Below are positions 1-32,030 of a stretch of 64,000 bases of DNA, piece after piece. The DNA lies in NCBI GenBank assembly GCA_965644315.1, contig CBFFRQ010000062.1, positions 496,001-560,000 of the forward strand. The letters are read 5' to 3'. The position numbers were made by a program, and so were the translations under genes. This DNA is from Caecitellus pseudoparvulus. Lineage: Eukaryota; Protista; Bigyra: Bicosoecida. Position 1 is the first letter of the stretch; the number at the start of each line of letters is the position of its first letter. The notes below the pieces were generated by a model, which worked only from the letters and a program-made list of their open reading frames with translations, did no database searches and had not been told where the DNA came from.

Positions 1-2
1 TA

Positions 3-3000
3 GCCATCCTTGCCCGCATCACCCTCCCGATCGTCTCGGGGCGCCTAGACGTCGACGCCTCCCCGCTGACTTTCTACTTGGCGTGGCTGTCATCGGTCGC
101 TGGGACGCTGCTAGGCGCTGTGTGCTTGCTTTGGGCTGTGTGCTCCGACGCAAGCTTCCAGAGTCAGTGAGTGGCAAGCGACGATGCATTTCACGTGCAC
201 GATGCCTGGCGTGCCGATGGCACTTCTCCAAAGTTGTTCCCATACACGACCGCGCCCACCACTTTGCAGGGGCCGGTTTCATTCTCACAGCACTCTAGCA
301 ACGGCGCGACGTGGCCGCGCTTCGACTCAGCGGCAATCAAGAACCAAGGAAAAACTTTCGATTGCTCTGTTTGTGTTCCTGTGGGTCTTCTCTATCCCCA
401 TGCTCGTCACGCTGAGCCGCATGCTGGCTTGCTTCCCCGCCCTGGACCCAGCGGTCCGGGCTCCTCACCTCATCCAGCGATGGGGCACCGCCACCAACGC
501 CATCTGGGGCAAGCCGGGAGCGCTGCTGCGGAGCACGGTGTTGCCACTGAGCACGCCCCTTGAGCACGGCGTGAGCATGGTGCCGGCGATGTTCGGGGGC
601 GTGGAGGCGTGCTACACGGGCTGGCACCTGGTGCATGCAGGGGTGTCAATGGCATGCCTTGGCCTGGTGAATGGCCTCTGCGTGCTTGGTCGTCTCATGA
701 TGGCTTTCCCTGACCCGACACTGCTGGGCAGCCGGTCTTTTGCGGAGGAAAACTTGACGGCCTCCCTCGGCGTACGGTGGGCTGTGCTTCTGGACATCGG
801 CCTTGTCTTCAACACAGCACTGGCGCTAACTGTCATTGCGGAATTCTTCCCATCATGGGCTCTAGGGTCCCTCCTCCCTTTGATTGGCGTGCTGTACCCT
901 GCGTGGACGCTCCACAGGCAGGTGCATGTGAACCCTCGACAGTTCAGAATCTGGTCTGCCGTTTGCTCAGCCATGGTGACGACTGGCCTCTGCAGCATGT
1001 TCATCGCAGGGGGCAGCACGGTGGACTACTTTGCCTTCGTGTCAGTTCTAGGGCTGGCCACCATCATCGTCGGTGCGGCGTCTGTTGACAGCTTCAGGCA
1101 GCGGGTGCTGGCCAAATCCCACGTGCAACTGTCAGTGCACGCACAGCTGTTCGTAGCAACTCTGCACGAGTCCAGGCGCTTCAGTAAGCGCCTTGCACGA
1201 GACCTCTTTGGGCGAGACACTGCGACAGTGGAAGTGTCCCGTGCACTGGCCCTGGCAGCTGGATGTGGCCCACAAGTGTGGAGTTCCGCTGACATGGCCC
1301 AGCTTCGATCTGCAGCCCACATTGCCCGCCTGCGGACTGCCCTCGCCGACAACCCCGCTCACGCCATCATCGCCCGCATGCGCCGCCTGCACCCCGACTC
1401 TGCCACCGCCGCCATGTACGAAGCCATGTGGCGCGGCAGTCCCTGGAGCGGGCACGGCGTGGGCGGCGAGGTGGCGGCCCTGCGACGCCTGTGGGCGCTC
1501 ACGCCTGCCCCCGACTTCCGCGTGTACATCTTGCACCGCCTGCAGTGTCTGTGGCGCCTGGAGAGCGCCGCCATGCTGGGGCTGGTGCGCCGGGCTGAGG
1601 TGCAGGGGCGCATGACGCTGGGTGGCTTAGTTGCGGCGGCTGGGCGACTGCGTGTGGCTGTGCAGGATGCGCAGGGAGGGGCGGGAGCAGGCAAGGGCCG
1701 GCGCGTGAGCGGCAGCGAGGCGTGGGAGCACAGCGCCGCATCGGCACACTGGGTGATGCGCGAGGTGCGCAGTGTGGTGGCAGCAGCTGGTGCTCGGTAC
1801 GAGTACTTGCGCAGCGTGGGGGGCATGCCTGGGCAGACGCGCCGGCAGTTCGAAGTGGCAGCGGTGGAAGGCGCGGTGGCTGGGCGCGAGGTGGGTGCTG
1901 GCGAGGCAGGGGGTATGGGCGCTGTGGTGAAGGGTGGTGGTGGGTCGGGTGTCGTGCGGGGTGCGTCCGGTGCGCTGGGTGGGTGGGTGCAGTTTGTGGG
2001 TCGAGGTGGGCAGGGCAAGGAGCCCCGGCAGCCCGTGCTGTGGGCAGAGGTGAGTGGCACTGGCAGCACACGGGGCATGGTGCTGTCAGTGAGCGAGGGC
2101 ATGGTGAGGCTGCTGGGGTGCAGCAGTGAGGGCGAGCTGGTGGGGCGAGGGTGGGGCGAGGTGATGGGCCTGGGTGGGGATGTGTGGTGGGGCGGCGTGG
2201 TCGCGAAGGGGCTGACGCCGGGGGACGTGGGTGTGCCGCGGTGTGTGAAGCTGGGTCGGCAGGGGCAGGAGGGCGTGGCGTGCCAGGTGTGTGTGTTGGA
2301 GGGCTGGGCGTTGGGCGGCGGGGGTCCTGAGGTGCGGTGGGTGGTGCTTGTGGCTGTACAGGGGGATGGCGGTGGTGGCGGTGGTGGCGGTGGCGAGATG
2401 GAGGAGGGTGATGTTGTCGAGGGGGGCGGTGAGCATGTGGCGGGGGATGGGGGTGCGGGTATGCAGGGTTGGGCAGTGCAAGCGGTGCGTTTGAGCAGTG
2501 CGAGCTGGAAGTCGGCGGGAACTTCCCACGCCGCATGGGGGTCCAACATAGCATGTATCATCATCATGCTCATTGGGTACATGTCGGTGGTACTCACCAA
2601 CCTTGACACATCGCTTGGAGGGTCCACAGGATTGCAAGTGGTTGGGCCTCGTGCCTTCTGGCGAGCCAGCTGGGCCAGCGACGCTGCCTCCACGTGCCTC
2701 GCACTGGGCACCATCAACGCCTCCCGCCCCCATGGCACGTCGCAGGACAGTGACGCACAAGTGGCGCACCTGCTGGATGTGTGGTCGGGCGGGCTCCGTC
2801 AAGGCAGCCATGTGATGGCAGAGTACCGGGAGCCGCGGGCGTTCTTCGACGAGGGCAAGGTGGCCCGCGTGTTTGGTGCAGTGATGGTGGATGAGGTGGT
2901 GACTGTGGGGGGTGCGGAGGGGAATGTCAGTGTGATGGGCGGGGGGGTATTGTCGATGCATGCGGCAGGTGGGGGCACGGGTGGCGTGGGAGGGTGGGGC

Positions 3001-4199
3001 GAGGTGACGGCGGCGTTGAACGTGAGCGGGTCGGTGTTGCAGGGGAGCGCGACTCGCTTCCTTGAGGCGCGAGGAAACTTCGACCTGCTTAGAGGTACTG
3101 TTGGTGCATTTACTGTCATTGGGGCAACGTATCTGGCAAGTATTTTTGTAGAGCGCTGGATGCAGCGTGCCGAGACCCGTGCTGAGCGGGGCGAGGACAA
3201 GGCCAGTGACATGCGCTCACGGCCCCTGCTGCACAGCGGGTCGCTGGTGTGGGCGACATGCGCGTCTGGTGTGCCGCTTGTGGTGATGTTTCTCGTCGTG
3301 TTCGTGACAAGCCGACTGGCCAGCCCGACGGGAGGTGCGCTCACGTTCATGGGTCGTGCCACATCTGGTGCCGTCGGACACCTCACCTCCACATCCACCT
3401 CCCTCCTCCAAACCCACATCGACTTGATGCGCGGCCAACCCATCCACCCGCCGCTCCTGCTCGAAGCCCAGCAACACCTGGCTGCAGCGCAGTGGTGGGC
3501 GCTGCAGGCCGGTGCCATTGCTGGGCAGCAGGACCACAGTCGGGAGGATGTCGTGGGTGTGCTGAGCCGAGCCATGCTGCGTGATGCATGTGGTCTACTG
3601 GGCGTGGTGGAGGGGGGCGACATGCAGGCCGTGGCAAGGGCCAGTGCATACACGCCTGACGGCGTGGCGGGTCTGTGGAGCAGTGGATGGGGCGAGTCGT
3701 ACCGATCACAGTGTGGTGGTGCGGGGGGAGGCGTGCTGTCGACGGGGGGCGTGACACGGGGTGTGCTGTGGGTGGCTGGGCACATGGAGCAGGTGGTGGG
3801 CGTGATGGCGAGGTGTGCGGGTGTGGGGGGCGGTGGGAACGCGACGGCAGAGGCGGCGTGTGTGGGCGGGAGGGGGTGGATCTGGCGGGGGCTGTGGGGG
3901 GGATGGGGAGTGGTGGTGGCGGGCTGGGGGAGGTGTTGGATGTGAGTGTGGTGCAGCTGGGCATGGTGCGGAGCGCGGTGGATTGGCTGGTGCTGGTTGG
4001 GTATGCTGCCATCGAGGCCGGCAGCTATACGCTGTATTGGGCTGCGCTGTACATTCCATTGGCACTCAACTTTGTCATTTTCCTTGGTGTTGTGCTCCCC
4101 ATGGTCAGGGCGAGGAGTGCCAACGTAGTTGCTCTTCAGCTTCGAAGCGTTTTGAGAGGGCTTGGGGCGCGTGTTCAATCATCCAAAGTAGAGGTTTAG
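3..4199 (+). CDS. TmcB-like multi-pass membrane protein with TPR-like and PAS-like domains, copy A (5' end outside window; 1-nt frameshift near 3866, so possibly a pseudogene or sequencing error)
   Basis: Frame 3 from nt 3 reads ...SGRLDVDASPLTFYLAWLSSV, homologous to the N-termini of copies B and C. A GTGAGT donor at 167 with an acceptor at 269 or 290 (phase 2) joins the 184-3945 frame. Motifs: CYTGWHLVH; RRLHPDSATAAMYEAMW...PAPDFRVYILHRL (TmcB TPR-like); VLSVSEGMVRLLGCSSEGELVGRGW (PAS-like). The C-terminal TM continues in the 3675-4199 frame. Confidence 0.7.
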
Positions 4200-7100
4200 C
4201 CCACGCAAGGTGACAGCCCGTTCACCAACGTTGAAGGCTGCGAAGCTCCCTTGGGATTTTCGTTTGCCGGTCATGCCTTCTCAAGTGCGAACGCGAAGTA
4301 TTGTTCAGTTGTGCATCGAGACACCTGCAGCTACCTCTGTGACAGCCTCAGCCGCGGCACAAATTCATGTCAATGGCCTAGTCTAGAGTGCTCCACGTCG
4401 ATCATGCATTCCTGGTCTGTTGATTCTGCTTGGTGGATTCTCACCGAGAGATGAAGTACCAAGCTCCTGGAAACAGTGGCAATGATGATAGTACTGTCGC
4501 TCTTGACACGGTTCACAATGCAGCAAAGAGACCCTTCAAGATGCACTTTCTCGCACTCGGACACCACAGAAGCACGAGTTACTTTGCCACACATGGCATT
4601 AGGTCTCTCTGGCTATCCCTTGTGTTGGAATCTGCTCCTGCATGCAGAGCAACAGTCCGCAGAAGGGTCAGGGCTAGGAGATTGCTGCTGCGAGAGCGCA
4701 CCACAGGGCGAACACACACCCAAAACACAAGCCAGCTCACCATAAGCGGGAGCACCACCTCGAACATGAGCAACGAAGGTATGGAAAGGTCGATGTCACC
4801 CCCAGCAACCAGCACCAGCCAATCCACCGCGCTCCGCACCATGCCCAGCTGCACCACACCCACATCCAACACCTCCCCCAGCCCGCCACCACCACTCCCC
4901 ATCCCACCCACAGCCCCCGCCAGATCCACCCCTCCCTCACCCACACACGCCGCCTCTGCCGTCGCGTTCCCACCGCCCCCCACACCCGCACACCTCGCCA
5001 TCACGCCCACCACCTGCTCCATGTGCCCAGCCACCCACAGCACACCCCGTGTCACGCCCCCCGTCGACAGCACGCCTCCCCCCGCACCACCACACTGTGA
5101 TCGGTACGACTCGCCCCATCCACTGCTCCACAGACCCGCCACGCCGTCAGGCGTGTATGCACTGGCCCTTGCCACGGCCTGCATGTCGCCCCCCTCCACC
5201 ACGCCCAGTAGACCACATGCATCACGCAGCATGGCTCGGCTCAGCACACCCACAACATCCTCACGACTGTGGTCCTGCTGCCCAGCGATGGCACCGGCCT
5301 GCAGCGCCCACCACTGCGCTGCAGCCAGGTGTTGCTGGGCTTCGAGCAGGAGCGGCGGGTGGATGGGTTGGCCGCGCATCAAGTCGATGTGGGTTTGGAG
5401 GAGGGAGGTGGATGTGGAGGTGAGGTGTCCGACGGCACCAGACGTGGCGCGACCCACCTGAACCGTGACCCTTTTAGAGCTCCCAGTGGACCGGCTCACA
5501 AGGAACACGACGAGAAACATCACCACAAGCGGCACACCAGACGCGCATGTCGCCCACACCAGCGACCCGCTGTGCAGCAGGGGCCGTGAGCGCATGTCAC
5601 TGGCCTTGTCCTCGCCCCGCTCAGCACGGGTCTCGGCACGCTGCATCCAGATCTCAAAGAAAGGTGCAACTGCTAACGCAAGGAACACGAAGAGGAAGGC
5701 CCCAACTGTCCCTTGGACAAAATCGGCCGCCCACTTCATCTCGAGAAAGCGAGTCGCGCTCCCCTGCAACACCGACCCGCTCACGTTCAACGCCGCCGTC
5801 ACCTCGCCCCACCCTCCCACGCCACCCGTGCCCCCACCTGCCGCATGCATCGACAATACCCCCCCGCCCATCACACTGACATTCCCCTCCGCACCCCCCA
5901 CAGTCACCACCTCATCCACCATCACTGCACCAAACACGCGGGCCACCTTGCCCTCGTCGAAGAACGCCCGCGGCTCCCGGTACTCTGCCATCACATGGCT
6001 GCCTTGACGGAGCCCGCCCGACCACACATCCAGCAGGTGCGCCACTTGTGCGTCACTGTCCTGCGACGTGCCATGGGGGCGGGAGGCGTTGATGGTGCCC
6101 AGTGCGAGGCACGTGGAGGCAGCGTCGCTGGCCCAGCTGGCTCGCCAGAAGGCATGAGGCCCAACCACTTGCAATCCTGTGGACCCTCCAAGCGATGTGT
6201 CAAGGTTGGTGAGTACCACCGACATGTACCCAATGAGCATGATGATGATACATGCTATGTTGGACCCCCATGCGGCGTGGGAAGTTCCCGCCGACTTCCA
6301 GCTCGCACCGCTCAAACGCACCGCTTGCACTGCCCAACCCTGCATACCCGCACCCCCATCCCCCGCCACATGCTCACCGCCCCCCTCCACGGCATCGCCC
6401 ACCTCCATCTCGCCACCGCCACCACCGCCACCACCGCCATCCCCCTGTACAGCCACAAGCACCACCCACCGCACCTCAGGACCCCCGCCGCCCAACGCCC
6501 AGCCCTCCAACACACACACCTGGCACGCCACGCCCTCCTGCCCCTGCCGACCCAGCTTCACACACCGCGGCACACCCACGTCCCCCGGCGTCAGCCCCTT
6601 CGCGACCACGCCGCCCCACCACACATCCCCACCCAGGCCCATCACCTCGCCCCACCCTCGCCCCACCAGCTCGCCCTCACTGCTGCACCCCAGCAGCCTC
6701 ACCATGCCCTCGCTCACTGACAGCACCATGCCCCGTGTGCTGCCAGTGCCACTCACCTCTGCCCACAGCACGGGCTGCCGGGGCTCCTTGCCCTGCCCAC
6801 CTCGACCCACAAACTGCACCCACCCACCCAGCGCACCGGACGCACCCCGCACGACACCCGACCCACCACCACCCTTCACCACAGCGCCCATACCCCCTGC
6901 CTCGCCAGCACCCACCTCGCGCCCAGCCACCGCGCCCTCCACCGCTGCCACTTCGAACTGCCGGCGCGTCTGCCCAGGCATGCCCCCCACGCTGCGCAAG
7001 TACTCGTACCGAGCACCAGCTGCTGCCACCACACTGCGCACCTCGCGCATCACCCAGTGTGCCGATGCGGCGCTGTGCTCCCACGCCTCGCTGCCGCTCA

Positions 7101-8393
7101 CGCGCCGGCCCTTGCCTGCTCCCGCCCCTCCCTGCGCATCCTGCACAGCCACACGCAGTCGCCCAGCCGCCGCAACTAAGCCACCCAGCGTCATGCGCCC
7201 CTGCACCTCAGCCCGGCGCACCAGCCCCAGCATGGCGGCGCTCTCCAGGCGCCACAGACACTGCAGGCGGTGCAAGATGTACACGCGGAAGTCGGGGGCA
7301 GGCGTGAGCGCCCACAGGCGTCGCAGGGCCGCCACCTCGCCGCCCACGCCGTGCCCGCTCCAGGGACTGCCGCGCCACATGGCTTCGTACATGGCGGCGG
7401 TGGCAGAGTCGGGGTGCAGGCGGCGCATGCGGGCGATGATGGCGTGAGCGGGGTTGTCGGCGAGGGCAGTCCGTAGGCGGGCAATGTGGGCTGCAGATCG
7501 AAGTACTGTTTTTCCGCAATTGTCTACGCTCTCTGGCCTCGTCCCATTGATCGCTTCAAGTGCGAGAGCTGCTTGGATCGGGCTGGTGTCCTTCCCCAAG
7601 ACGCGGTCCAGGGCAGATCTGAAGGCCAAAAAGTTTACGTTGATGGCCCGCAAGAAAAGCTGGCCAGGAACAGTGAGCTTCGTTGCAACGGAGGATGCAA
7701 TCCAGTTGTGTGTGGTGATCAAGAGCGCCGCCACAAGCACGAGCAAGATGGAGCCAACTGCCACAAGCGACAGCGTGAGGTCAACTCCGCGCTGCCCCAG
7801 CGTTGTGATGCCCACGATGAGCCCAGAAGTCAGCATGGACGAGCAGGCACCACCCCACAGACCGAGTTGGTTTGGGTTTGCATGAGGCTGGGTTTGAGAG
7901 GACACCACCAAGTACAGCCCACCCACAGCTGGCGCGAGGAAGGACATGAGCCAAAGTGGAATCAAGTCCAACAGGAGAACGAAGTTAATGGCACTCGAGG
8001 CAGTGAAGAGCACTTCAAGAACGAGTGAGACCCGCTGGTTTGTTGTGGTGGTAATGCCCTCTGAGGCGTTCCGCTGGGCAGTCAGCCTGGCTGGATGGGG
8101 CAGGCTGTGCAGCAGGCGAACCACAAGGGACAGGTTCGTGATGGTTGAAAGGCACACGGCGCTGATGAGCACGTGCACCAGGTGCCAGCCCGTGTAGCAC
8201 GCCCCCACGCCCCCGAACATCGCCGGCACCATGCTCACGCCGTGCTCAAGGGGCGCGCTGAGCGGGAAAACCGTGCCTTTGGACAGCGCTCCCGGCTCGC
8301 CCCAGATGGCGTTGGTGGCGGTGCCCCATCGCTGGATGAGGTGAGGAGCCCGGACCGCTGGGTCCAGGGCGGGGAAGCAAGCCAGCATGCGGC
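416..8393. repeat. Large inverted repeat (palindrome) formed by copies A and B; arms ~416-3998 and ~4807-8393
   Basis: Mirrored shadow ORFs have a constant coordinate sum of 8806 (1499..2554/6252..7307; 3217..3537/5269..5589). Near-identical blocks: A416-635/B8174-8393, A1303-3059/B5747-7503, A3157-3303/B5503-5649, A3350-3998/B4807-5456. Confidence 0.95.
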
Positions 8394-8883
8394 CCAGAAT
8401 CAGCGTCAGGGGGACACTGAGTGCCCAGAAAGTGAAGTGAAGGACTCCGCTCAGGAGTTTCTGCCGCTGTCGCAGCGGCTGCAGCCAAGTTTCTATGGCT
8501 GGAGGAAGGAGACCTGCGCCTTTCCCCCGCCCGAACGAGGAGCTCTCCTTTGATCTCCCAACCAGAAAGGTTGGAGTCAGGAGCCCAGGCAACAGCAGCA
8601 CCACCCAGGCTGTGCCGGCGACAGCGACGGAGCCGAGCCAAAGCCCGTAAAACACGGCAGGAGAAAGGTCCACGTCAGCTCGCCCGGCAACGAGATACAC
8701 AGAAAGTCGCCCAAATAGCGTCAGGCCGCTGTTTTCTTGCCCCACTGCCAGTGCAGGCACGTACGCGGCCAGGCATACTACCTGAACTGCCCGCACCAGC
8801 ACCAGGGTTTGCATGAATGCATGGCTGAGTCGGGGAAGGCGCAGAACCGCTAGGATCCAATGCCACAATGGGATAGAGGGCAT
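4579..8883 (-). CDS. TmcB-like multi-pass membrane PAS-domain protein, copy B (~1434 aa, uninterrupted)
   Basis: Single long ORF, first ATG at 8883 (MPSIPLWHW). It has an N-terminal TM bundle, the same TPR-like and PAS-like motifs as copies A and C, and C-terminal TM helices. Confidence 0.8.
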   Translation of the reverse strand: MPSIPLWHWILAVLRLPRLSHAFMQTLVLVRAVQVVCLAAYVPALAVGQENSGLTLFGRLSVYLVAGRADVDLSPAVFYGLWLGSVAVAGTAWVVLLLPGLLTPTFLVGRSKESSSFGRGKGAGLLPPAIETWLQPLRQRQKLLSGVLHFTFWALSVPLTLILGRMLACFPALDPAVRAPHLIQRWGTATNAIWGEPGALSKGTVFPLSAPLEHGVSMVPAMFGGVGACYTGWHLVHVLISAVCLSTITNLSLVVRLLHSLPHPARLTAQRNASEGITTTTNQRVSLVLEVLFTASSAINFVLLLDLIPLWLMSFLAPAVGGLYLVVSSQTQPHANPNQLGLWGGACSSMLTSGLIVGITTLGQRGVDLTLSLVAVGSILLVLVAALLITTHNWIASSVATKLTVPGQLFLRAINVNFLAFRSALDRVLGKDTSPIQAALALEAINGTRPESVDNCGKTVLRSAAHIARLRTALADNPAHAIIARMRRLHPDSATAAMYEAMWRGSPWSGHGVGGEVAALRRLWALTPAPDFRVYILHRLQCLWRLESAAMLGLVRRAEVQGRMTLGGLVAAAGRLRVAVQDAQGGAGAGKGRRVSGSEAWEHSAASAHWVMREVRSVVAAAGARYEYLRSVGGMPGQTRRQFEVAAVEGAVAGREVGAGEAGGMGAVVKGGGGSGVVRGASGALGGWVQFVGRGGQGKEPRQPVLWAEVSGTGSTRGMVLSVSEGMVRLLGCSSEGELVGRGWGEVMGLGGDVWWGGVVAKGLTPGDVGVPRCVKLGRQGQEGVACQVCVLEGWALGGGGPEVRWVVLVAVQGDGGGGGGGGGEMEVGDAVEGGGEHVAGDGGAGMQGWAVQAVRLSGASWKSAGTSHAAWGSNIACIIIMLIGYMSVVLTNLDTSLGGSTGLQVVGPHAFWRASWASDAASTCLALGTINASRPHGTSQDSDAQVAHLLDVWSGGLRQGSHVMAEYREPRAFFDEGKVARVFGAVMVDEVVTVGGAEGNVSVMGGGVLSMHAAGGGTGGVGGWGEVTAALNVSGSVLQGSATRFLEMKWAADFVQGTVGAFLFVFLALAVAPFFEIWMQRAETRAERGEDKASDMRSRPLLHSGSLVWATCASGVPLVVMFLVVFLVSRSTGSSKRVTVQVGRATSGAVGHLTSTSTSLLQTHIDLMRGQPIHPPLLLEAQQHLAAAQWWALQAGAIAGQQDHSREDVVGVLSRAMLRDACGLLGVVEGGDMQAVARASAYTPDGVAGLWSSGWGESYRSQCGGAGGGVLSTGGVTRGVLWVAGHMEQVVGVMARCAGVGGGGNATAEAACVGEGGVDLAGAVGGMGSGGGGLGEVLDVGVVQLGMVRSAVDWLVLVAGGDIDLSIPSLLMFEVVLPLMVSWLVFWVCVRPVVRSRSSNLLALTLLRTVALHAGADSNTRDSQRDLMPCVAK

Positions 8884-9964
8884 GGCTGCTGTATGACCCC
8901 TGTTCAATCACCCTTGCGGGCTCTCTCTGACTGCCGGCTGCCCGGCGCAGCGAGCGGGAGAATCGGCTCGCTCTCGCCAACACGCCACGCACGCTTCCGA
9001 ATCACTTGACGGCCGTGAACGGCACGCGAGGGTCTGGCAAGCTCAGGCTTGCGAGACTATGACGAGAACGCCACGCCTTGTGTCTCTCCCTGTGACCGCT
9101 TGGCGCCATGTGCGGAGAGTGCGTGGCAGCTGTGAATTGGTCAACTTCTCTGGCTGCGCGGCTGCAGCGTGAGCGCATTGGCTCTGGAAGCTGGTGGTTG
9201 GTGACAGACGGCCGAGGGCAAGGCGGAACCGTGAGTCCGTGGCAGCCGAAGGCGCTGGTTGTGAGCTACCTTCGCTGGGCTAGTTTCCTGCCCCGCGGGA
9301 GCAAGCTATATGTTGCCGCGAGAGGCAAAGATGGCACGCTGGAGTGCAGGGGGACGAGGCAGGCTTGAAGCTCACGCACAGCTTGCCGTCGAGAGCGAAG
9401 TGGGTGTCACATGTCGGGATGGAGAGCTGCAGTGGGCGCAATGAGGGGGGAGGCGCTTGGGGCCGTGGTCTTCCCTCCAGACCCAAAGCGGGTGTGCGCC
9501 CTCTCTCCGCAGTGTGACGTGGCTCAAGCCACTAAAGTGTGCCACCGTTGGCGTCGACCAGTTTCCGCACCAAAACCTGAGGGATGCTGGCTTTCGGGCC
9601 GATATCTTGGCCAACTGAAGAAGAACTTGAGAAGTACACTCTACATACTAAAGAATCACCAAACGGCCTGCATTTATAATCCGAAGACTCACAGGAGCTG
9701 CGCAGGGTGTCTTGATAGGGTTGAAGCAGGCTCCTTACCAAAATCCGCATTTGTTCACACGGCGCTGCACGAACGGTGCGCGAGCAGCCCCTTGGAACAA
9801 AATCACTAAGTCCTCACAAATGCGTACAGCGCCAAATATTTCGTGCCTTGTCCAAACGTGCAAGTGTCCCCCAGGCTGCGAAGCTGGCTTGGCTGGCTCC
9901 TTTGGCGATTGAATTGGAGCGACATTGCTTGGGACGGTTGTGCCCCTTTCCTGCCTGTGGCGCA

Positions 9965-12031: not shown

Positions 12032-14131
12032 CTAGACACGCTGCAGAGACTGCGCATCTAACGCACCTGCGGCGACTCCTGCATCTGCCTGAGCCCTTGT
12101 ACTGAGTGCCGCCCCCGCCACGCCGTCCAACGCCTCGTCTGTCAGCTCCCGCAGCCAAGAGTCAATGTCGGGCGTGGAAGTGCGGGGCGGCGTGGAGGCC
12201 TGCAGCGGCGCGCCGTAAGTCACACCCGCCCATGCCTGGAGCTGCTCCTCCTCACTCTCGTGCAGAGTGCCGGGCAGCGCCCATGGCTCTTGTGTCGGTA
12301 TGCCGGTCGTGTTGGCGTGCCGCACGATGGGGAGGGCGGAGGAGTCCACTTGCTCCGAGCGGGGCAGCGCCAGCTGGTCCCACACCTGGTCCAGGGCGTG
12401 CAGGAGGTCCCGCAACATGGACATGGTGTGCACTGGCGTGACGGTGAAGCGCAGGCGCTCCTGTCCCCTCGGCACGGTGGGGAAGTTGATGGGCTGCACG
12501 TACACGCCGTGCTGCTGGCGGAGGATGTCCGAGGCGGCCTTGGCCTTGGCGGCGTCCCCGACAAAGACGGGGATGATGTGGGAAATGGAGTCCATGAGAG
12601 GCAGGCCCGCCCCCACCAACAGCTCCTTCAAGCGGTGTGCCTTGGCGTGCATGATGCGGCGCTCCCACTTGGAGTTGGCCAGGTGCTGCACACTGGCCTC
12701 GGCACCCGCCGCGACGACGGGGGGGATGGACGTGGTGAAGATGAACCCTGGCGCAGTGGAGCGCATGGTGTCGATGAGGGGGGCAGAGGCGGCCAGGTAC
12801 CCCCCCACCACACCGTACGCCTTGCCCAGCGTGCCGGTGATCATGGTGAGTCTGCTTGCCTGCCCGTCGCGCTCCGAGATGCCGCCGCCCCTGTCGCCGT
12901 ACAGCCCCACGGCGTGCACCTCGTCGCAGAAGGTCATGGCGCCGAACTCGTCCGCCAGGTCGCAGATGTCGGACAGCGGCGCCACCGTGCCCTCCATGCT
13001 GTTCACGCTCTCGAAAGCGATGAGCTTGGGCGCCTGCGGGTCTGCCTCGGCCAGCAACCGGCGCAAGTCGTCCATGTCGTTGTGTTTGTAGATGACCTTG
13101 CGCACACGGGCGTTGCGCACGCCGTGGATCATGCTGGCGTGGTTCATGGCGTCGGAGAAAATGATCAGCTCAGGGAACACCTTGCCCAGCGTGGCCAGCA
13201 CAGTCTCGTTGGCGACATAGCAGGAAGAAAACACCAATGCACTTTCTGCACTGTGCAGGTCTGCCAGCGTGCGCTCCAGGGCGACGTGGTGCACGTTCGT
13301 GCCGGAGATGTTGCGCGTGCCGCCTGCGCCGGCGCCGCAGTCGTCCAGGGCGCGGTGCATGGCAGCCAGCACTGCGGGGTGCTGGCCCATGCCCAGGTAG
13401 TCGTTGCTGCACCAGGACACAAGGGTGGCTGCGCCTCCATCTGTCGTGGTGTGTGGGAAGTTGCCAGCCTGGGAAGGGAGGGTGGCGGTGCGGGTGCGAG
13501 TGTGATGTGCGGTCCAGGTGAGGGAGGGCAAGTGCACCGTACCTTTCGAGCCTGTTCCAGGAACACACGGTATCGCCCCTCAGCCTTGATGGTGTCCACT
13601 ATGCCCTGGAACTTGTCACGGTACCAGCCTGCACAGGGGCGAGGGCGGTGTGTCGGCGTGATCACACCACATGGATGCACGGAACTCTGCTGCATCAGCT
13701 GCACTCACCGCTTGAAAGGTGCGCCTTGGCACCAGAGGCAGCACTGGCGTGGCCCTGGGTCTCATCTTGCGAATCTTCAGTCACGCAAGGTGCGCCACAT
13801 GCAACTGCAGCGGCAGGGCAGGCAGTGAAGTGAGGTGACACGCAGGCGATGCCGTCAGCGTTTCGCCGCAGCAGCTGGCCTCGAACGCACCCTGAACCCC
13901 GCAGGCGCTGCATGTGGTCATGTCGTCCAGCTCACGATTCGATGCTGCTGCATCTGCCAGGTGCAGGTATGGGGACTCATGTGTCCGGACCATGTGCGGG
14001 CACTGCACAGCCAGCTGCGGCACCTGCCCCGTCACGGCCGCTGCAGGTGTGCCTGTCTGCGTGATACTGTGCAGGAAGGGGCACTTCCGCACAGCCCCAG
14101 CGGCCCGAGTGGCCACACGTGGGGCAGACAT
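12032..14131 (-). CDS. ALAS: 5-aminolevulinate synthase, mitochondrial
   Basis: [36 protein letters not shown] and the PLP lysine in TLGKAYG. Presequence carries CP motifs. Introns at 13890-13805, 13708-13629 and 13542-13469 restore the frame. Confidence 0.97.
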
Positions 14132-15306: not shown

Positions 15307-15308
15307 AG

Positions 15309-19991: not shown

Positions 19992-20204
19992 GCATCTCGG
20001 CAGCGTGCTGAAGCCGACTTGCTGTAGCTAATGATTGAAGGGTGTGTGCGCGACCAGGCACAGCCCCTGTGCCCGTCTTGGATTTGCGTGGCTTGGCCTG
20101 CAGCAACAGCGCCAGTTGCGCCACCTGCACACAATCCAACACACCCCCCGACACACACCGCCGACACACAGCAGGGTTGTGCGAGTCCCACCTCCTGCAC
20201 CACC

Positions 20205-23033: not shown

Positions 23034-23290
23034 GACTGGGCGCTGTTGACGTGAGTGCTGCCTGCTGCTGTTGTTCTGGCGAGTGAGGGGCGTGCTGGGA
23101 GTGACGAGTCTTTCTCACCTTAGCTTCAGGCATGCTGATACTCTATCTTCAAAGTTCGCTGACCCAGCCCGCCCCTCCGCTGCAGTCCCCTTCGCTGCGC
23201 GTGCCTGCGACCACTGTTCCCACACACGCACATTTCGCGCACTCCATCACAGAGACGCAGCCCAGGCCGATGCCCTTGCAATGCATTTCT

Positions 23291-24159
23291 TCACTGCTCA
23301 GTGACGGAGGCCAGCAGCTGCTTCCACCCGCGACCACTGTGGGCCGACACAGTGAAGCAGTCCACATCCACGTGGCAGTCGGCAGCGAAGGTGAAGGCCT
23401 TGCCGCGCCGGCCCAGCACCGCCCCAGACCCGCCGTCACTGGTGTCTGCCAGGCTGCTTCGAGTGTCCTTCACCGCCGTCACGGCCCGCTCCAGGGCGCT
23501 CTGCAGCTCGCCCGCTGTCAGCGCGTCCGCCGCGTCAGCCTTGCACCCCAGCAGGGTCAGGCGCAGCCCCCGCTCCACCATGGCCGGGGTAGTCAGGAGG
23601 TCGAACAGCATTTCCCCCGCCTGGGCCATGTGCTGCGCGTCCCCTGCGCAGTCCACGGCGAACACCACTCGGCGGGCGGTGGGCAAGAAGTCTCGCACGG
23701 CTCCAGCGACACGGGGGTGGCCCGGCACATCGACGAGGTGCACCTTGTGGTCTGGAAGGTCTGCCAGTGCCACCGTCTTGTCCAGGGGCTTCACCGACAG
23801 CACAGTCTTCTCCACATGGCCCTTCCACAGCTGGGAAGGTGAGTGTGAGGTTGGCCGTGGCCACCGCTGTGCATCGGCGTCGTGGGCGGTGCACGCACCT
23901 TGTGCACAATCGTGGTCTTGCCTGCGCCCTCAGGGCCTGTAAATACAATAGCTGACCCCCCTTTCCCTGCCACAGCCCCTGTCAAGCTCGGCAGGAGGCC
24001 TGCACAGGCAGGGGAGAAAGCGTGTGGAGCCAGGCTGGGCAGCATGCACAGGAGTCACATGCCCTCACCGATGACTGCTGGCAGCACCACCACGGCAACG
24101 AGGAGGGCTGCAAGTGCCACGCGCCAGTCGCTTGTAAGCGTCTCCAGCACCCCTTCCAT
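23291..24159 (-). CDS. SRPRB: Signal recognition particle receptor beta subunit
   Basis: N-terminal TM anchor, P-loop GPEGAGKT, LVDVPGHPRV, GCKAD and a GKAFTF motif. Introns at 24068-24000 and 23898-23831. Confidence 0.85.
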
Positions 24160-24433
24160 TCTACTTGAGCCCTGCAGCAGTTGCGGTGCGGAACTTGACA
24201 GCTGTCCCGAGCGCACGTCAGACAGGTCGACTGTGGAAGCGCAAGGCAGAATGGGGCCCGTCGTAAATCGTTCTTAAGAGCTAAATTACATTGTTGTTGC
24301 CACTGTGGGATTTTACCTGCATGCTGCGACTGAGGAAGGGTCCGCAGGAAGCAGCAGTGGGACGGCCTTGACTTGGCGTTTCGGCGTTTCGACGCACGTG
24401 TGCAGCCGGGCCTAGTTTCGCCACCCAGGCGCC

Positions 24434-26180
24434 ATGGCAGATGTGCGTGCGCAGTCAAGGCCCCAAGATGCTGAACGCAGTGCTTCACACACCCCTCACT
24501 CGCCTGGGCGCCTCTGCAGCTCTTTAGTTTCCTTGGCGCAGCCCTCGGCGGCAGCCAGACGTAAGCACCACGCCGGCGCACACGCACTGCGATTGCGAGT
24601 CACGCCAGGCCCCACCGCGCCTCGCCACAGCTTCATCCAGCAGTACAAGTGCCACAGCTTGGCCATGCTGGGTGACCATTTCCAGGAGTACAGTGACAAG
24701 GGTGCGAGCCAGTCGGCGAAGCTTGCAGCCAGTCCTGCCTCACAACCACTTGGCTCTCCCCGCAGTCGTCCTGCCCCCCTCCGCCCTGGACCGCCTGTGT
24801 ACGTGACCAGCAGAGTCCCAATGTCCCGCCAAGTGTCACGCCCTGCCACTGTCTCCTCCCGCTGCAGCGCGCATGCAAGTGCAGTACCCGATGCTGTTTG
24901 AGCTGCGCCACGATGCGCTGGGACTGACGACACACGTTGGCACGCTGGAGTTCACGGCAGCAGAGGGCTTCGTGCACGTCCCTCGCTGGCTCATGGCCAG
25001 CCTGCACATCCCCGAGGGCGGCGTGGTCACCCTCACCAACAAGGCCCTGCCCAAGGCCAGCTGGGTGAAGCTGCAGCCACAAAGCAAGGAGTTTCTGGAC
25101 CTGTCTGACCCGAAGGCGGCCTTGGAGGTCGTCTTGGCGCAGTTCTCCTGCTTGACGCAGGGCCGCACCATCACGTTTCAGCACGCTGCGCGGGAGTACC
25201 AGCTCCTGGTGCAGGAATTGAAGCCCGCGGTGAGCAGCGCACAGCGACACGCACGCCACTGAATCGCCGCTGCCCACACCGCGGGACACGCCGCGCCTGC
25301 ACAGGATGCCTGCTGCATCATAGAGACGGACATGGAGGTGGACTTCTCTGCCCCGCCTGGCTACGAAGAGGAGATGGCGGCCCAGGCCGCCAAGGCAGCC
25401 GCAGCCAAACAAGAGGCGGAAGCGGCTGCCGCAGCTGCAGCGGAGGCTGAGGCGGCGTCCAGCGCCTTCACAGGCACCGGGCACCGACTGGTGTCTGACA
25501 AACGCACGACGAACAGCACCACCAACGCGAACAGCGGCACGCCCTCCCCCATGCTGACGGCGGCGCTGGGCGGCACGTTGCTGGGCAGGAGTGTTGTTGG
25601 ACGCCCAGCTTCCAGCGCATCGCCTGCCACGGCGCCCAAACAGTCTTCAGAGGCAGAGGAGCCCAGTGGGGGGAGTGCTTTCAAGCTGGGGGGCGTGAAG
25701 AACCCCGGGCGCAGGCTGGGCGGCACGCCTGCTCGCCGCACGAACTTCGCCGGAACAGGCGGGGGGCGGCGCGTGGATGGCGCTCCCGCCCCGGCGCCCG
25801 TTCCCGCCAGCCTCGCCGCAGCAGCCGCGGCACCCTCCGCACCCAAGCGCCCTGCCCTGGACCTGGGCGACTCACCGCCGCCCAGCTCGGCGCCTGCCCC
25901 TCCCGCAGGCCCAGGCCACGTTTTGGGCGGCAACGACGTGCGCCCGACGGTGCAGCCACCGCCGGTCCCTGGCCAATCTGCTCCGGCGACTGCTTCCCCC
26001 GCAGGCGCCACGCCGGGTGGTACAGGCGGTGGCCACCGTCTTGGGGGTGGTGACTCACCCTCCCGCCCCCCCAGTGCAGGTGGGCACCGGAACAAGTTTC
26101 TGGAACGGTTCCGTGCGCGGCAGGAAGCTGCGCAAAGCTCCGCCGCCTTTTCCGGCACAGGCCGCACACTGCAGGACTGA
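24434..26180 (+). CDS. UFD1: Ubiquitin fusion degradation protein 1 (p97 cofactor)
   Basis: Spliced SDKVVLPPSALDRL...QYPMLFEL, THVGTLEFTAAEG, VKLQPQSKEFLDLSDPKAALE, IETDMEVDF and C-terminal SHP boxes. Five introns at 24443-24519, 24561-24630, 24702-24765, 24798-24867 and 25230-25304. Confidence 0.93.
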
Positions 26181-26291
26181 GATCAGGCGCGGGGCACGTG
26201 GCGGCAGTGCCTGGATGCGGGGGTGTCAGACAAATGCATGCATTCTTCGTGTGCGCTTGCGCCCCTGCGCCAGGCTGGCGTCCTGAGCGCG

Positions 26292-27297
26292 CTACCACTC
26301 ACCGTCCACCTCTGTGACAATGTCGCTGATGCAGGGGTAGTGTAGAACCCCCCCTGCGACTTCAGGGCGCAGGGTTTTCATGTGCTGCACAGCTTTCTTT
26401 GCTGCCCAGCCGTTGGCGATGAAGTGAGCCAGCACGATGGTGGCAGAGCGCCCCATGCCGGCTTTGCAGTGCACGAGCACTCGGTTGGTGGGGGTGGCCA
26501 ACGCAACAGCCATCCAGCGCAGGGCCTGCTGCACCTGGGGCGTCCGAGGCACATCTCCATCCGGTACCGGCACGTACAGCTGCTCCACGCCGGCCTTGGC
26601 GTACGCTGCGATGGGCCCCTCATACTCCGCGCACATGTTCACAACATGCGTCACGCCGCGGTGCCGCAGGTGCTTCACATCCCACGAGAAAGGGATGGAG
26701 CCCAGGAACACCTGCTGCGTCATGGGGGTCATGAGGCTGTGCAGGCGCCAGCCGCATGCCGCCCACGCCACTGCTGCCAGCGTGAGTGGCGTATCCCAAA
26801 GCACTCGCAGGGCCAGCACCAGCCAGGCTGGAAATGGCGCCTGGTCGTCCCTCCACGCAAACAGGAACGCGGGAAGGGTCCCTGCCAGCCACAGCCAGTC
26901 CCACCCACTGCCGAGCATCCAGCAAAGGGGGGCGAGGAGAGCTGCCACCCTGCGGTGAGAGGTCACATGGGGTGGCGAGGTGCCCGTGCGGCGAGGGTGC
27001 CTGGGCGCACGCACCAGACGTGCATCCACATCACCACGAGGAGCAAGCGGAACTGGCCAACCAAGCGACGGTGCTGGACAGGAATGAACTTCCTGTGCAC
27101 CACGGGGAGCGGCAGCTGTGTGTGCGCATCTCGAAGCCAGGCTGCAAGCTCAGGCCGTACCTGTACACCGCCACGGCGACCGGCACGATCGCTGCGTAGG
27201 CAAGCCAAGGCGCCCCAAACCAAATGCAGACTGCACCAAAAGCAACTACGCCTGCAAGCAGCACCCTGAGCAGCGTAAGGGAGCTCTTCCTGTCCAT
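26292..27297 (-). CDS. Dual-specificity phosphatase, PTPMT1-like, with N-terminal TM segments
   Basis: VFLGSIP, VVNMCAEYEGP and catalytic VHCKAGMGRSAT. The hydrophobic first exon starts at ATG 27297 and ends at a GTACGG donor; internal exon borders are approximate. Confidence 0.75.
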
Positions 27298-27558
27298 GCC
27301 TGGCTCTTGCCGTGCGGAAATTGGTGCCAGTTTCAAGAGATTGACAGCGTAAACGTCGAGCGGCAGCTTCTGGAGTGGAGATGGGGAAAGTAGCAGTGGG
27401 AGGGAAAAATAAAGTTTGATGTGCCAAGGGTTTTATTCGCAGATGGATTCGTGGAAGGGTGTTTGTGCTGCTGCATTGGCGGAGAAAATATGGAGTCTGT
27501 GCAGCAGCTCCAAGCGCTGGGCAACAACTCCCTGGGCCAGGGGAGCGCCCCCGCAATA

Positions 27559-30500
27559 CTAACACATGTCTTCCTTGACGCTCTTCACTTTGATGCCTTC
27601 TGATGCAAGGCGCATGGAGCCCAGCTCACCCACCATCCACACACCTCGCAAGCCTCCGACACGCTTGCCCACGGCGGGCAGCACCAGCCAGCTAAACACG
27701 CTCCATGCCAGCACCACGCCAATGCAAAGGCACAAGACCGTGCCTGCGATGCCGGCACTGTACACAGAACCGCTGCCCACTGCCAGGCTAGCCTCAAGGA
27801 GTGCCAACACTACGCCCAGCTGCACCACGCCCACATCCAACACCTCCCCCAGCCCGCCACCACCACTCCCCATCCCACCCACAGCCCCCGCTAGATCCAC
27901 CCCTCCCTCACCCACACACGCCGCCTCTGCCGTCGCGTTCCCACCGCCCCCCACACCCGCACACCTCGCCATCACGCCCACCACCTGCTCCATGTGCCCA
28001 GCCACCCACAGCACACCCCGTGTCACGCCCCCCGTCGACAGCACGCCACCCCCCGCACCACCACACCTTGACCGGTACGCCTGCATGCGGAGGCTGGTCA
28101 GCGTGGAGGTCAGTCCTCGGGGGGCATACAGACTGCCACTCGCAGCTCCACCCAGGGGCGCGTCACCATCCAGCACGGAGCCAAGGAGGCACGCATCGTG
28201 ATGCACCGCATCGTACACAGCAGCCTGCGCCGCCGACACGGGCGGGACTGCAGAAAGCGCAGGCAGGCGCGGAAGAGAGTCGAGGCGGAACGTCCACCAG
28301 CGCGCAGCGTGAACACTGTCAGCGGCCACTGCAAGCTGAGGCGAGGACAGGGGGCGGCCGTCGTGCAAGTCAGCTGCTGCAGACAGCACCCCTGCCAGGG
28401 CGATGTGGGTGTGCCCGATGCTGGCGACGCTGGCCACTGCCACCGCCCTGAAGCCAGTGTCGATGCTGCTTTGTGTCATGTCCACAAGCAGGATGCCGAT
28501 GAAGCACGAGAAGAACACCGCCCCCACAGCCTGCAGCGGGCCCAGCAGCGAGCCGTGGGCGCGACACAGCCTGCCGCTGCAAAGCACTTTCACTGGCCGG
28601 GCGCTGATGCCCAGAGCTGCAGCAGCAGCAGACACAGCCTCGTTCTCTGTGCGCTGCAGCCTCGCCTCGGCGCAGCACGCGGTGGCAGTGGACACCGCGA
28701 TGATCGTCAGCATAGCGACAGTACCGCCAAGCACCTGCCCAGCGCTGACCTGCATCAATGCAGCCTCGACATCCTGGTACATGCTGGTCCCTGTCTCATT
28801 CATGGCTGCAAGGGCGGTTGTGTCGTTGCTGGTCATGCTCTGCCAGGCGCTGCCCGGAGTCTGGTCATGCTGTGCGCGGAACAGCATGCCATCCACTGCC
28901 GCCATGACAGGCTGTGACTGGGACGAAGTGTCGGCGTTTGCATCGCGCAGGATGCGGTTCTGCCACTCCTGCACGGCTGGTGCCCCAACAAGGTAGTCAA
29001 GAACGTCGGCACGTGCGAGGAGGTCCATGACATCACGGCGTGAAGTGATCCAGTCTCCGACAGCTTCGTCAGCCGCCTGGGCAAGCTGCGAATGGGTGGA
29101 ATTGCCGGCCAGCTGTACCATGGAGGCCCACTGGCGGCTTTGGTGCCCATGCGTCGCGCAGCGCCACAGTGCCAGGGGGGTCAAGAGCCGCTGGCCATGT
29201 GTGCTGTCCGGGCCAATGACGAGGTTGGGCAGCACGACAGCGCAGAAAACGCACACAACCAACACCATGGCCACACGTTGCTGCCAAAGTGCGCCCCGAT
29301 ACACCACGTGACTGGTCACTGGCTGGGCGGCCACATGCAGAGCTTGCACGGCCGCCTGCTTGAGGCGTGGCTCGCTCGAACGCATTGTGTGGCCGGAAAG
29401 AGCGTCTGAATGTTGGCAAGCCTGAGTGGGCTGACGAGGGGTGACGCGATCACCCTGCACAGCTACAAGCACCACCCACCGCACCTCAGGACCCCCGCCA
29501 CCCAGCGCCCAGCCCTCCAACACACACACCTGGCACGCCACGCCCCCCTGCCCCTGCCGACCCAGCTTCACACACCGTGGCACACCCACGTCCCCCGGCG
29601 CCAGCCCCCTCGCGACCACGCCGCCCCACCACACATCCCCACCCAGGCCCATCACCTCGCCCCACCCTCGCCCCACCAACTCGCCCTCACTGCTGCACCC
29701 CAGCAGCCTCACCATGCCCTCGCTCACTGACAGCACCATGCCCCGTGTGCTGCCAGTGCCACTCACCTCTGCCCACAGCACGGGCTGCCGGGGCTCCTTG
29801 CCCTGCCCACCTCGACCCACAAACTGCACCCACCCAGCCAGCAGCTTGGCAGGATCGGCAAGTGCTTCGGGGGCTCCACTTTCTTTCAGTCCGTTTTGAG
29901 CAGAAACTTGGCAGGTTTCGGCGCGGAGGGCAAGCCCCGAATCGAGCCCAAACCCGCCAGTCTGCGCCGCATCTGTGGCTTCAACAGCCGCCTCCACTGA
30001 CGTAGCAGCCACCTGGATGGGTGACTGCGCGCTGCTCGCATTGGAGGATCGCTGCGCAGCAGCACTGAACTGCACAGCCGCAGAGGCAAGGGCCCGCAAG
30101 TCCCGCACCAGGCGGCTGCCTGCGTGCAGGATGTTGTTTGTGGCAACGCCTCCAGCACTGGAGACACCTTTCAGGCGGCGGAGGGCAAAGTTCAGGTCGG
30201 ACGTGAAGCGCGCCTGGGTATCGGTGGCTTTGGCCGCGCTTGCACGAAGCAGTGCAGAGCGCTGCACGACGAGCCCCAGCATGGCGGCGCTCTCCAGGCG
30301 CCACAGACACTGCAGGCGGTGCAGGATGTACATGCGGAAGTCGGGGGCAGGCGTGAGCGCCCACAGGTGTCGCAGGGCCGCCACCTCGCCACCCACGCCG
30401 TGCCCGCTCCAGGGACTGCCGCGCCACATGGCTTCGTACATGGCGGCGGTAGCAGAGTCGGGGTGCAGGCGGCGCATGCGGGCGATGATGGCGTGAGCGG

Positions 30501-32030
30501 GGTTGTCTGTGAGGGCAGCCCGCAGGCGAGCTACACGGCACGGCGACTTTACGGCAGTTGCGTGAGACGCTGTCCAAATGGAGGGGCCGAACTGGTTCAA
30601 CTCCGCCAATGCCTTCCCAACCTCTCGAGTGCTCGCTTCCAGCCCGATAACCTTGGCCGTTGCAGCTTTGGCTGCCTCATGTGTCTCGGCCAGCGCACAC
30701 ATGCTCAGCGCTTCGACTCGCACCAGGTGCTCGCGGAATGACCCGAGAATACTGTGCCTGACTGTGTCAACAGTCGCCCCTCCAAACACCACAACAGCTA
30801 GGATGATTATCATGGTCATGAGGGACACGTCCACTCGATGGTCTGAGGCAAGCGCCACTCCAGCGCTGACGGAGCTGGCGCCCAGTGCGGCGCAGGTCGC
30901 CGCCCACACCCGGAATTGGTGCGGGTTCGCGTGGATGTTGAACCACAGAGCTCCCGTGATGTATGACACTGCGACCTGCGGCACAAGGGCGGGCCCCACC
31001 CACAGTGGCAAGAGGTCCAACAGCGCGCCAACTGTCAGGGTCGCCCCTGCAATGATGCCAACGTCCAGAAGGAGAGCCCATCGAATGGACAGGACTGCAG
31101 CAATGGGGAGAGAGGTTGCGGGCAAAGATGTAAATAGTTCCGGGTCTGGCAGCGCATACATCAGCCGCCCCGGCACTGAGGCAAAGAGGATGACGAAGAA
31201 GCACGCGGCGCTGATGAGCACGTGCACCAGGTGCCAGCCCGTGTAGCACGCCTCCACGCCCCCGAACATCGCCGGCACCATGCTCACGCCGTGCTCAAGG
31301 GGCGTGCTCAGCGGCAACACCGTGCTCCGCAGCAGCGCTCCCGGCTCGCCCCAGATGGCGTTGGTGGCGGTGCCCCATCGCTGGATGAGGTGAGGAGCCC
31401 GGACCGCTGGGTCCAGGGCGGGGAAGCAAGCCAGCATGCGGCCCAGCACAATCAAGCAAGGTATGGATGCAGCCCAGAATCCCCCGTAAATGACCAGGCC
31501 AACGACCAATGCGAGCGTGGAGGATTTTGTCGAGGCGGTGAACCTGCGAGGTGAGTCGCGGGGGCCAGGTTTGGGCGTTGCCGTCGGCGGGGACAGCGTG
31601 ACGGGACGTACAGCTTCACTCTCTGAGCCCACGGTGCATGTTCTCTGTCTTTCTGACGTGATGTCCCCGCCCCTTTGCCGGCGAGCTGTGCAGCGCCGAC
31701 GGCTGCTGAGGATGCAGTTGCGGCAGCCGCCCACCGCCACCAGCACCACACCGCAGCCAAGGCGCCAAGCATGGCAAGGGCGACGAAGACGGACGTCATC
31801 CATGCTAAGTAGAAGACTAAGGGGGACATGTCAAGGTCCAGTCGGCCGCCCAGGATGACAGCCGCGAGGCGCCCCAGGACTGCCAAGTCTGGACTGCCTA
31901 CGTTGGCCCCCATCGCTGAAAAGTAGAACGCCGCTACCAGCAACTGCGCAGCTTTGCAGGCCACCACAATACTTTGCAGGCGCGAGGACGGTAAGGGAAG
32001 CAGGAAGAGGGGGAGAATTACTGCCTCCAT
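27559..32030 (-). CDS. TmcB-like multi-pass membrane PAS-domain protein, copy C (~1467 aa)
   Basis: Exon 1 (32030-31612) is homologous to the N-termini of A and B. A phase-2 intron at 31611-31544 (GTACGT...CTCAC..CAG) joins the 27559-31803 frame. It shares four near-identical blocks with A and B. Confidence 0.8.
27814..31443 (-). repeat. Four dispersed near-identical cassettes shared with copies A/B: 31210-31443, 30272-30507, 29452-29835, 27814-28066
   Basis: Direct nucleotide identity, including synonymous positions, with A 416-635, 1348-1585, 1981-2365 and 3711-3962. The intervening DNA is not alignable by eye. Confidence 0.93.

Follow-up and report, generated by a model that had tools for sequence, protein, structure and literature searches.

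The final 64 kb of contig C62 (CBFFRQ010000062.1) in the genome assembly of the marine bicosoecid protist Caecitellus pseudoparvulus (30.6 Mb in 215 contigs), hereafter the window, contains three predicted genes for large membrane proteins, A, B, and C, whose DNA is a mosaic of near-identical and anciently diverged blocks. Gene A occupies positions 1–4199 on the forward strand, with a first exon that begins approximately 180 nucleotides (nt) upstream of the window and a main reading frame that opens at 270; removal of a predicted forward-strand intron of 103 nt (167–269; GTGAGT…GCAG), recognized from splice motifs and frame arithmetic only, would place the first exon in frame with the main open reading frame (ORF). 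Gene B (4579–8907, reverse strand) is a single uninterrupted ORF of 1442 amino acids (aa), and gene C (27559–32048, reverse strand) is composed of a main ORF at 27559–31803 (1414 aa) and an N-terminal exon in another frame that extends to approximately 32048. A predicted reverse-strand intron of C (31544–31611, 68 nt; GTACGT…GCAG), recognized again by splice motifs and frame arithmetic only, would on removal link this exon in frame to the main ORF, and B is continuous at the equivalent point. A and B are arranged tail to tail as a palindrome, their convergent 3′ ends separated by a spacer of 379 nt (4200–4578), and every A/B repeat arm returned by the repeat finder has a common centre of symmetry at approximately 4403. 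Gene C lies at a distance of 19–23 kb from this pair. Compared with B and C, one nucleotide is deleted from A at approximately 3868, within a G-rich run, and the main frame of A then stops at 3945; past the deletion, the B-like frame continues uninterrupted for 110 codons until a stop at 4199 and encodes a homologous hydrophobic helix. This frame break is either very recent or a sequencing error. Since the 1442 codons of B remain open in a window of approximately 65% GC content, and the tail frame of A remains open beyond its deletion, the genes appear to have been maintained.

The mosaic is real and non-random. A preliminary description of this DNA, made from its letters alone, had reported that the three genes switch abruptly between identity and saturation, and alignment windows, substitution counts, and shuffles all bear this out. 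A, B, and C jump between 96–100% nucleotide identity, with a synonymous difference of approximately zero, and 40–55% identity, with synonymous and non-synonymous sites both saturated. In a three-way alignment, windows of 60 nt pass between 95–100% and 35–60% identity, and the change occurs within a few bases. When the codon alignment is read in windows of 20 codons, the proportion of synonymous sites that differ (pS) is 0.00–0.1 in the constant blocks, while elsewhere pS is 0.5–0.9 and its non-synonymous counterpart (pN) is 0.4–0.7, both of them saturated. The longest perfect runs measure 536 nt between A and B and 157 nt between C and either of the others, against maxima of 80 and 27 in 2000 site shuffles, and the excess of run length over the shuffles holds at third codon positions too.

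Only four blocks, designated K1–K4, are common to all three genes (forward strand in A, reverse strand in B and C), and C is diverged everywhere outside them. K1 (A 411–635, B 8174–8400, C 31223–31447) includes the loop motif that is most conserved across the superfamily to which the proteins belong; here 3 of 225 nt distinguish A from C, and a small patch at 8277–8283 is private to B. K2 (A 1322–1586, B 7220–7484, C 30269–30533) aligns with the start of the TPR domain of TmcB, while K3 (A 1974–2371, B 6435–6832, C 29445–29842) corresponds to a PAS-fold domain and has a G-rich coding strand with a GC skew of +0.52. K4 (A 3695–3968, B 4837–5111, C 27808–28082), also G-rich, gives a mixed tree signal and contains both the 1-nt deletion of A and a spot that is also variable in a second strain. 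Between C and the other two genes, the K blocks diverge by 3–4%, at scattered sites.

A and B also share approximately 2.7 kb, their common sequence including a further ~2 kb in which C has no part, and this sharing is interrupted at a transmembrane hairpin by two islands, 77 and 35 nt long and equal in length between the two genes. All of these features lie on the forward strand in A and in mirror image in B. The long arm reported by the repeat finder (1303–3066, mirrored at 5740–7503; 1764 nt, 99% identity) contains 8 differences in 1756 aligned nt, and the four amino-acid differences previously counted between A and B over 1303–3059 hold. It ends at island 1 (A 3067–3143, B 5663–5739), which is 77 nt long in A and B alike and takes in a juxtamembrane stretch together with the transmembrane helix at residues 1068–1086 of B. 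A short arm follows (3144–3314, mirrored at 5492–5662; 171 nt, 94% identity), then island 2 (A 3315–3349, B 5457–5491), 35 nt in both genes and located at the exit of the helix at residues 1119–1137 of B, and finally a third arm (3350–4015, mirrored at 4790–5456), which the repeat finder returned in two pieces, 3350–3876 and 3873–4015. The first island had been described as 32 codons of complete divergence without an insertion or deletion; its core of 77 nt, equal in both genes, agrees with this, and the second island adds a further example. Upstream of the long arm lies the variable block V1 (A 636–1302, 667 nt; B 7504–8173, 670 nt), which encodes the N-terminal membrane bundle and a helical linker, and in which the proteins A, B, and C are only 24–30% identical. 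The length conservation claimed for this interval stands insofar as B and C are equal (the repeat spacing is 23049 on both sides) and A is 3 nt shorter, while the absolute lengths that were quoted depend on where its bounds are drawn.

A view of the locus in another strain is provided by the metagenome scaffold L018 (ENA ERZ23499060), which is 98.9% identical to the window over 13834–27978 (14.1 kb), spans the unique 3′ part of C, and stops inside K4 of that gene. The variable tail of C shows 2 differences in approximately 250 nt between the strains (99.2% identity), and is thus anciently diverged between paralogues but not hypervariable between strains. By comparison, 6 of 171 nt differ in K4 of C, in a cluster that includes one A-like variant and several private ones, as read from the one scaffold end. 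A scaffold end inside K4 is the behavior expected of a short-read assembly at a repeat, and breakage of such assemblies within constant blocks may be why no protein of the A/B/C type is on record. Looking up the exact products of two ORFs of the window, in order to reach contigs of other strains beside B and C, gave no record.

The same scaffold bears on whether the mosaic could be an artefact of assembly or polishing, in which identical blocks were collapsed or cross-polished. The 1-nt deletion of A, in a G-rich run, is typical of long-read error and would suit such an origin, but cross-polishing is unable to raise 45% identity to 100%, the K blocks of C are 3–4% different from those of A and B at scattered sites, the reading frames of B and C remain intact for 1400 codons over all junctions, and the independent short-read scaffold of the other strain joins the unique 3′ end of C to K4. 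An artefact is accordingly regarded as highly improbable. The constant blocks of A, B, and C were found nowhere else in the whole 30.6-Mb assembly, and no DNA block is common to the distant paralogues and any of the three genes.

Rather than a single tree for all blocks with uniform synonymous divergence (dS), the outcome that the preliminary description had set against its own proposal of gene conversion, the opposite was found. In K1, 13 informative sites unite A with C (AC|B) and none unites A with B (AB|C), while K2 and K3 support AB|C with 11 and 12 sites, respectively, and K4 is mixed, with 9 sites for AB|C and 6 for BC|A. Divergence between A and B falls as block length rises, from 3–5% in blocks of 95–117 nt and 1.9–6% in blocks of 155–171 nt to approximately 1.5% over 650 nt and 0.45% over 1764 nt, as expected if the efficiency of conversion depends on the length of homology. 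The GC content at third codon positions (GC3) is 0.82–0.91 in K1–K3, 0.74–0.76 in K4, 0.66–0.69 in V1, and 0.43 in island 1 of A, compared with 0.61–0.82 in the other genes of the window and the distant paralogues. The raised values of K1–K3 fit GC-biased conversion, and the low values fit a long escape from it. Because trees are specific to blocks, longer blocks are more alike, and GC3 is raised in the constant blocks, ongoing segmental gene conversion between loci is supported as the process that made the mosaic, in line with what had been proposed from the letters alone. Mosaic interlocus conversion has been described for tandem HMA4 genes (bioRxiv 10.1101/2025.10.29.685298).

These block histories also bear on a selective explanation at the nucleotide level, in which an embedded RNA or regulatory element would keep the K blocks identical and conversion would play no part. 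That the same four blocks recur in all three genes is what this explanation predicts, but the trees differ by block, a further 2 kb is common to A and B but not to C, and K4 differs between strains at 6 of 171 nt against approximately 1.1% in the neighboring DNA, which argues that K4 is under no unusual nucleotide-level conservation. This explanation is barely credible.

The age of the unconverted sequence can be gauged from V1, where paralogues from other contigs match A, B, and C at 21% identity and two of these paralogues match one another at 27%. Set against the 24–30% among A, B, and C, these values indicate that the three genes are old paralogues whose similar parts were kept or made identical, and not young duplicates with fast-evolving patches. 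The explanation proposed here combines old, linked paralogues, homology-limited conversion, and islands that suggest selection, and it is assigned a probability of roughly 0.78 as a whole. Under this explanation, homologous recombination would keep copying stretches among A, B, and C (interlocus gene conversion), most frequently between the A and B arms of the palindrome and less frequently with C, 19–23 kb away. As uninterrupted homology would be required, blocks that are still similar, including the constrained K1 and K2, would repeatedly be erased to identity and drift to high GC, while stretches that had once diverged would act as barriers and remain diverged, producing a sharp two-state mosaic. 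Converted membrane helices would in addition be selected against, either because helices are co-adapted within each copy or because they serve copy-specific functions. The data establish the mosaic, its departure from chance, the trees that vary by block, the signature in base composition, and the family relationship, whereas the direction and tempo of conversion, and any selection on the islands, are inferred. The locus represents a known process in unusually sharp form, and not a new diversity-generating system.

The suggestion of selection comes from the position of the islands. Hydropathy predicts transmembrane helices in B that include residues 154–172, 244–262, 295–313, 379–397, 884–902, 1068–1086, 1119–1137, and 1372–1390. 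Differences between A and B lie in the N-terminal region with the whole bundle (to residue ~470), islands 1 and 2, and the C-terminal membrane tail after 4015. As both islands fall on one transmembrane hairpin and the remaining A–B differences fall in other membrane segments, selection against converted helices is suggested. The loop joining the two hairpin helices is charged, N-X-S/T sequons are found in the flanking domains, and we infer from these features that the two islands share one side of the hairpin, probably the extracellular one. The preliminary description had assigned the variable pieces mainly to membrane helices and adjacent loops; for A and B this stands insofar as the islands are on predicted transmembrane or juxtamembrane sequence, whereas the helix at 884–902 is identical in the two genes, and the rule is too narrow for C, which is diverged far more widely. 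Peaks of divergence under conversion are sites at which selection resists conversion (PMC3924837), and two short islands within 2.7 kb of A–B identity plausibly fit this signature. That selection keeps the islands distinct, through co-adapted helices or a copy-specific function, is put forward tentatively, at somewhat less than even odds.

The same conversion origin could also leave the islands neutral, if tolerant helices passed the divergence threshold of recombination early and have since been mere barriers. Several observations are compatible with this version, namely the relation between length and identity, which fits homology-limited conversion, the low GC3 of the island sequence, which is expected after long escape from biased conversion, and the family-wide constraint on K1 and K2, whose motifs are the most constrained of the family (40–46% identity among or to the distant paralogues, versus 16–27% in V1). 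However, approximately 460 poorly constrained codons (V2, V3a, and V3e; 13–25% identity to the distant paralogues) remain identical between A and B while only the 77- and 35-nt patches are saturated, so that low constraint alone is not the reason why these two patches diverged. Neutral islands are accordingly considered unlikely, though a good deal less so than the other alternatives discussed here.

A number of points weigh against the combination of conversion and selection preferred here. Selection on the islands is unmeasurable, as pS and pN are both saturated and the ratio of non-synonymous to synonymous rates (dN/dS) is uninformative. K4 and the stretches shared by A and B only are no more conserved family-wide than the variable blocks, and protein constraint alone therefore cannot explain which blocks stay homogenized. 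The frame-breaking deletion in A means that one conversion partner may be a recent pseudogene. The A/B palindrome is known from assembled sequence alone and its genes are predicted, the cross-strain history rests on a single scaffold end, and no orthologue of the A/B/C type is present in a library of 1.84 billion proteins, although all four distant paralogues have one there.

The preliminary description had gone further and proposed a combinatorial sensor or self-recognition system. In such a programmed system, crossovers in the inverted A/B arms would flip the DNA between them and swap cassettes and tails, in the manner of a shufflon, or the genes would form a self/non-self set. Three inverted arm pairs do flank the islands and the 3′ ends, with 4403 as their approximate centre of symmetry, and all three genes carry G-rich motifs of the quadruplex type in K3 and K4. 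Conversely, there are just two invertible partners, three genes in total, and no silent cassettes in the assembly, and neither conserved short recombination sites nor a recombinase gene was seen in the window. The variable tail of C is stable between strains, with its 2 differences in ~250 nt, and an inversion by ordinary homologous recombination would be rare and not programmed. The relatives in another organism are single genes: two family members were sampled there, and the one locus that was scanned has no repeats. The proposal is thus not supported, and a programmed system of this kind is improbable. It is likewise a long shot that the A/B palindrome is a working shuffler, through which two expressed genes would trade their transmembrane hairpin cassettes and C-terminal membrane tails. 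If it were, a clonal population could hold up to eight combinations, and conversion would keep the arms identical so that shuffling would still be possible. Two further candidates were rejected, namely donor cassettes elsewhere in the genome, as the constant blocks were not found outside A, B, and C, and a tandem paralogue beside the relative in the other organism, where the neighbor is unrelated and the stretch is without repeats.

Among known systems, the preferred explanation of old paralogues under homology-limited conversion has its closest counterparts in the primate red and green opsin genes, the tandem HMA4 copies of Arabidopsis halleri, and the GOT1 paralogues of Tigriopus, in all of which interlocus conversion is accompanied by islands of divergence (PMC3924837; bioRxiv 10.1101/2025.10.29.685298; PMC3728101). 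A, B, and C resemble these cases in the homogenization of tracts between linked paralogues, the sharp peaks of divergence, the block-wise genealogies, and the rise in GC. They differ in that the contrast is extreme, from zero to saturated at both the synonymous and the amino-acid level, in that the A/B islands are as short as 35–77 nt and two of the partners are set in a palindrome, and in that the unconverted parts date back as far as the split from the paralogues of other chromosomes.

The ampliconic palindromes of primate Y chromosomes and the inverted repeats of plastids have arms that are kept more than 99% identical through intrachromosomal conversion around a short spacer. A and B are likewise inverted arms around a short spacer, but here the arms consist of the gene bodies of a convergent pair, with ancient heterologous islands breaking them up. 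The R64 shufflon and the VSG, var, and vlsE systems, as in A and B, place constant repeats beside variable coding segments, and inversion could be mediated by the inverted repeats, whereas A, B, and C have no silent cassette array, no site-specific recombinase, no short conserved sites for crossover, and no more than two or three partners; in the tail of C, the single variable piece that could be compared, no such variation between strains was seen. The locus thereby offers a clean natural case in which conversion and divergence have split a gene into two states, with islands so short that they single out particular helices of an uncharacterized, protist-wide membrane family. If the islands are selected, they would mark a site of specificity or of helix packing in TmcB-type proteins and provide a starting point for experiments. 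The locus also serves as a warning for annotation and phylogeny, as family trees depend wholly on the block chosen and short-read assemblies break in the constant blocks.

The family itself was approached through four further paralogues on contigs C80 and C18, which are 17–24% identical to A, B, and C. Searched against Pfam, A, B, and C gave nothing at E ≤ 0.1, and the PF25474 and PAS models were not significant directly; the four distant paralogues gave, at E ≤ 1, only a weak PAS_9 match in one (E = 0.02). A profile built from the N-terminal halves of the seven proteins matched just 18 proteins in the library of 1.84 billion representatives. Four of the 18 are orthologues of the distant paralogues, 91–99% identical and from other assemblies. 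The more distant matches, of 2200–2600 aa (P0012, P0013, P0015, and P0016), carry PF25474 (TPR_TmcB) at 33–56 bits, above the cut-off of 27, directly after the matched bundle, and a weak PAS match follows TPR_TmcB in these relatives (PAS_9, E = 0.007–0.01). When the family profile was compared with TPR_TmcB-bearing proteins by hhalign, the two aligned with a probability of 99.6% (E = 1.3e-24) over 359 columns that run through the bundle into the first part of the TPR region, equivalent to K2, and the feature neighbors in a language-model atlas were TPR_TmcB/PAS clusters (score 0.97). Searches for homologues with the whole of B and with the neighboring CLU gene gave no match, and no relative was found in JGI metagenomes with B as query.

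The name of PF25474 comes from the ‘tiny macrocysts’ proteins of Dictyostelium. The TmcB-type likeness noted at the outset, with a membrane bundle, TPR, and PAS, was upheld through transitive profile evidence and a PAS fold match, with no direct Pfam hit. A, B, and C thus belong to a divergent, lineage-restricted branch of the TmcB-type family. They have the same order of bundle, TPR, and PAS as TmcB-type proteins, but have no direct significant match to PF25474 or PAS and only 18 detectable relatives. In the predicted architecture, the N-terminal transmembrane bundle is followed by a TPR region, then by a PAS domain, and then by additional transmembrane helices with two probably extracellular domains. 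As no output domain was recognized in the A, B, and C proteins, the term ‘receptor-like’ is a guess. One of the matched proteins, CAE6973595.1 (P0003), is labelled Symbiodinium sp. KB8 and is 94.6% identical to one of the distant paralogues; its probable source is a related heterotroph that contaminates the Symbiodinium assembly.

Modelled with AlphaFold2 (AF2), K3 (B residues 680–830; mean predicted local distance difference test score, pLDDT, 74.5) adopts a predicted PAS fold, a five-stranded sheet with intervening helices. All 50 of the 50 best listed Foldseek matches of this model in the PDB are PAS domains, 13 of them at E ≤ 0.001, and the PAS domains of FixL, WalK, and PYP are matched at E = 3e-4 with template-modelling scores of up to 0.68. 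Profile searches against the PDB gave marginal matches (E of 0.002 to 1) that are mostly PAS, including all of the eight best (best E = 0.002–0.03). For the membrane bundle, a PDB sequence search with the profile of N-terminal halves found no solved relative, and an AF2 model of 1200 residues (pLDDT 49) was too poor for a fold search or for helix packing. Within K1, residues 225–245 of B (window ~8173–8235, reverse strand) have the pattern S-x-x-P-x-x-F-G-G-x3-C-x2-G-x-H-x2-H, the most conserved part of the TmcB-like superfamily. The Cys and the first His are invariant in 22 sequences, and the motif may be a site for a metal or a cofactor within a membrane-bundle loop.

The composition of the three genes is uneven as well. 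A coding-strand skew of G over C of +0.3 to +0.57, present at third positions too and accompanied by 21–25% Gly, is restricted to K3, K4, and the stretches shared by A and B (A 1974–3060 and 3695–3968, mirrored in B, and K3 and K4 of C), and the quadruplex-type motifs of A, B, and C lie in these same K3 and K4 blocks. It is not seen in K1, K2, the homologous variable stretches of C, or ordinary genes (−0.09 to +0.08). Its cause could be a transcription-linked mutation bias or recombination-prone G-rich DNA.

The neighbors of A, B, and C in the window are eukaryotic and include CLU/eIF3-p135, DAAF9-like, RTP1-like, and TFIIIC tau95 genes, an aminotransferase, and a fusion of a cyclophilin with a DEAD-box protein. 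In the last of these (20031–22544, forward strand), one reading frame joins a cyclophilin domain to a DEAD-box helicase of the HAS1/DDX18 type, and the same Pfam combination is present in its closest database matches, from other organisms. The aminotransferase ORF of class I/II (12032–13537, reverse strand) has no ATG before its conserved core and likely has an upstream exon; we take it to resemble the ALA-synthase/KBL type. The CLU/eIF3-p135-like gene (32513–39007, reverse strand) lies within a stretch of 71–76% GC (32001–40000), well above the rest of the window, while GC falls to 56–58% over the final 8 kb of the contig (56001–64000), compared with approximately 65% elsewhere.

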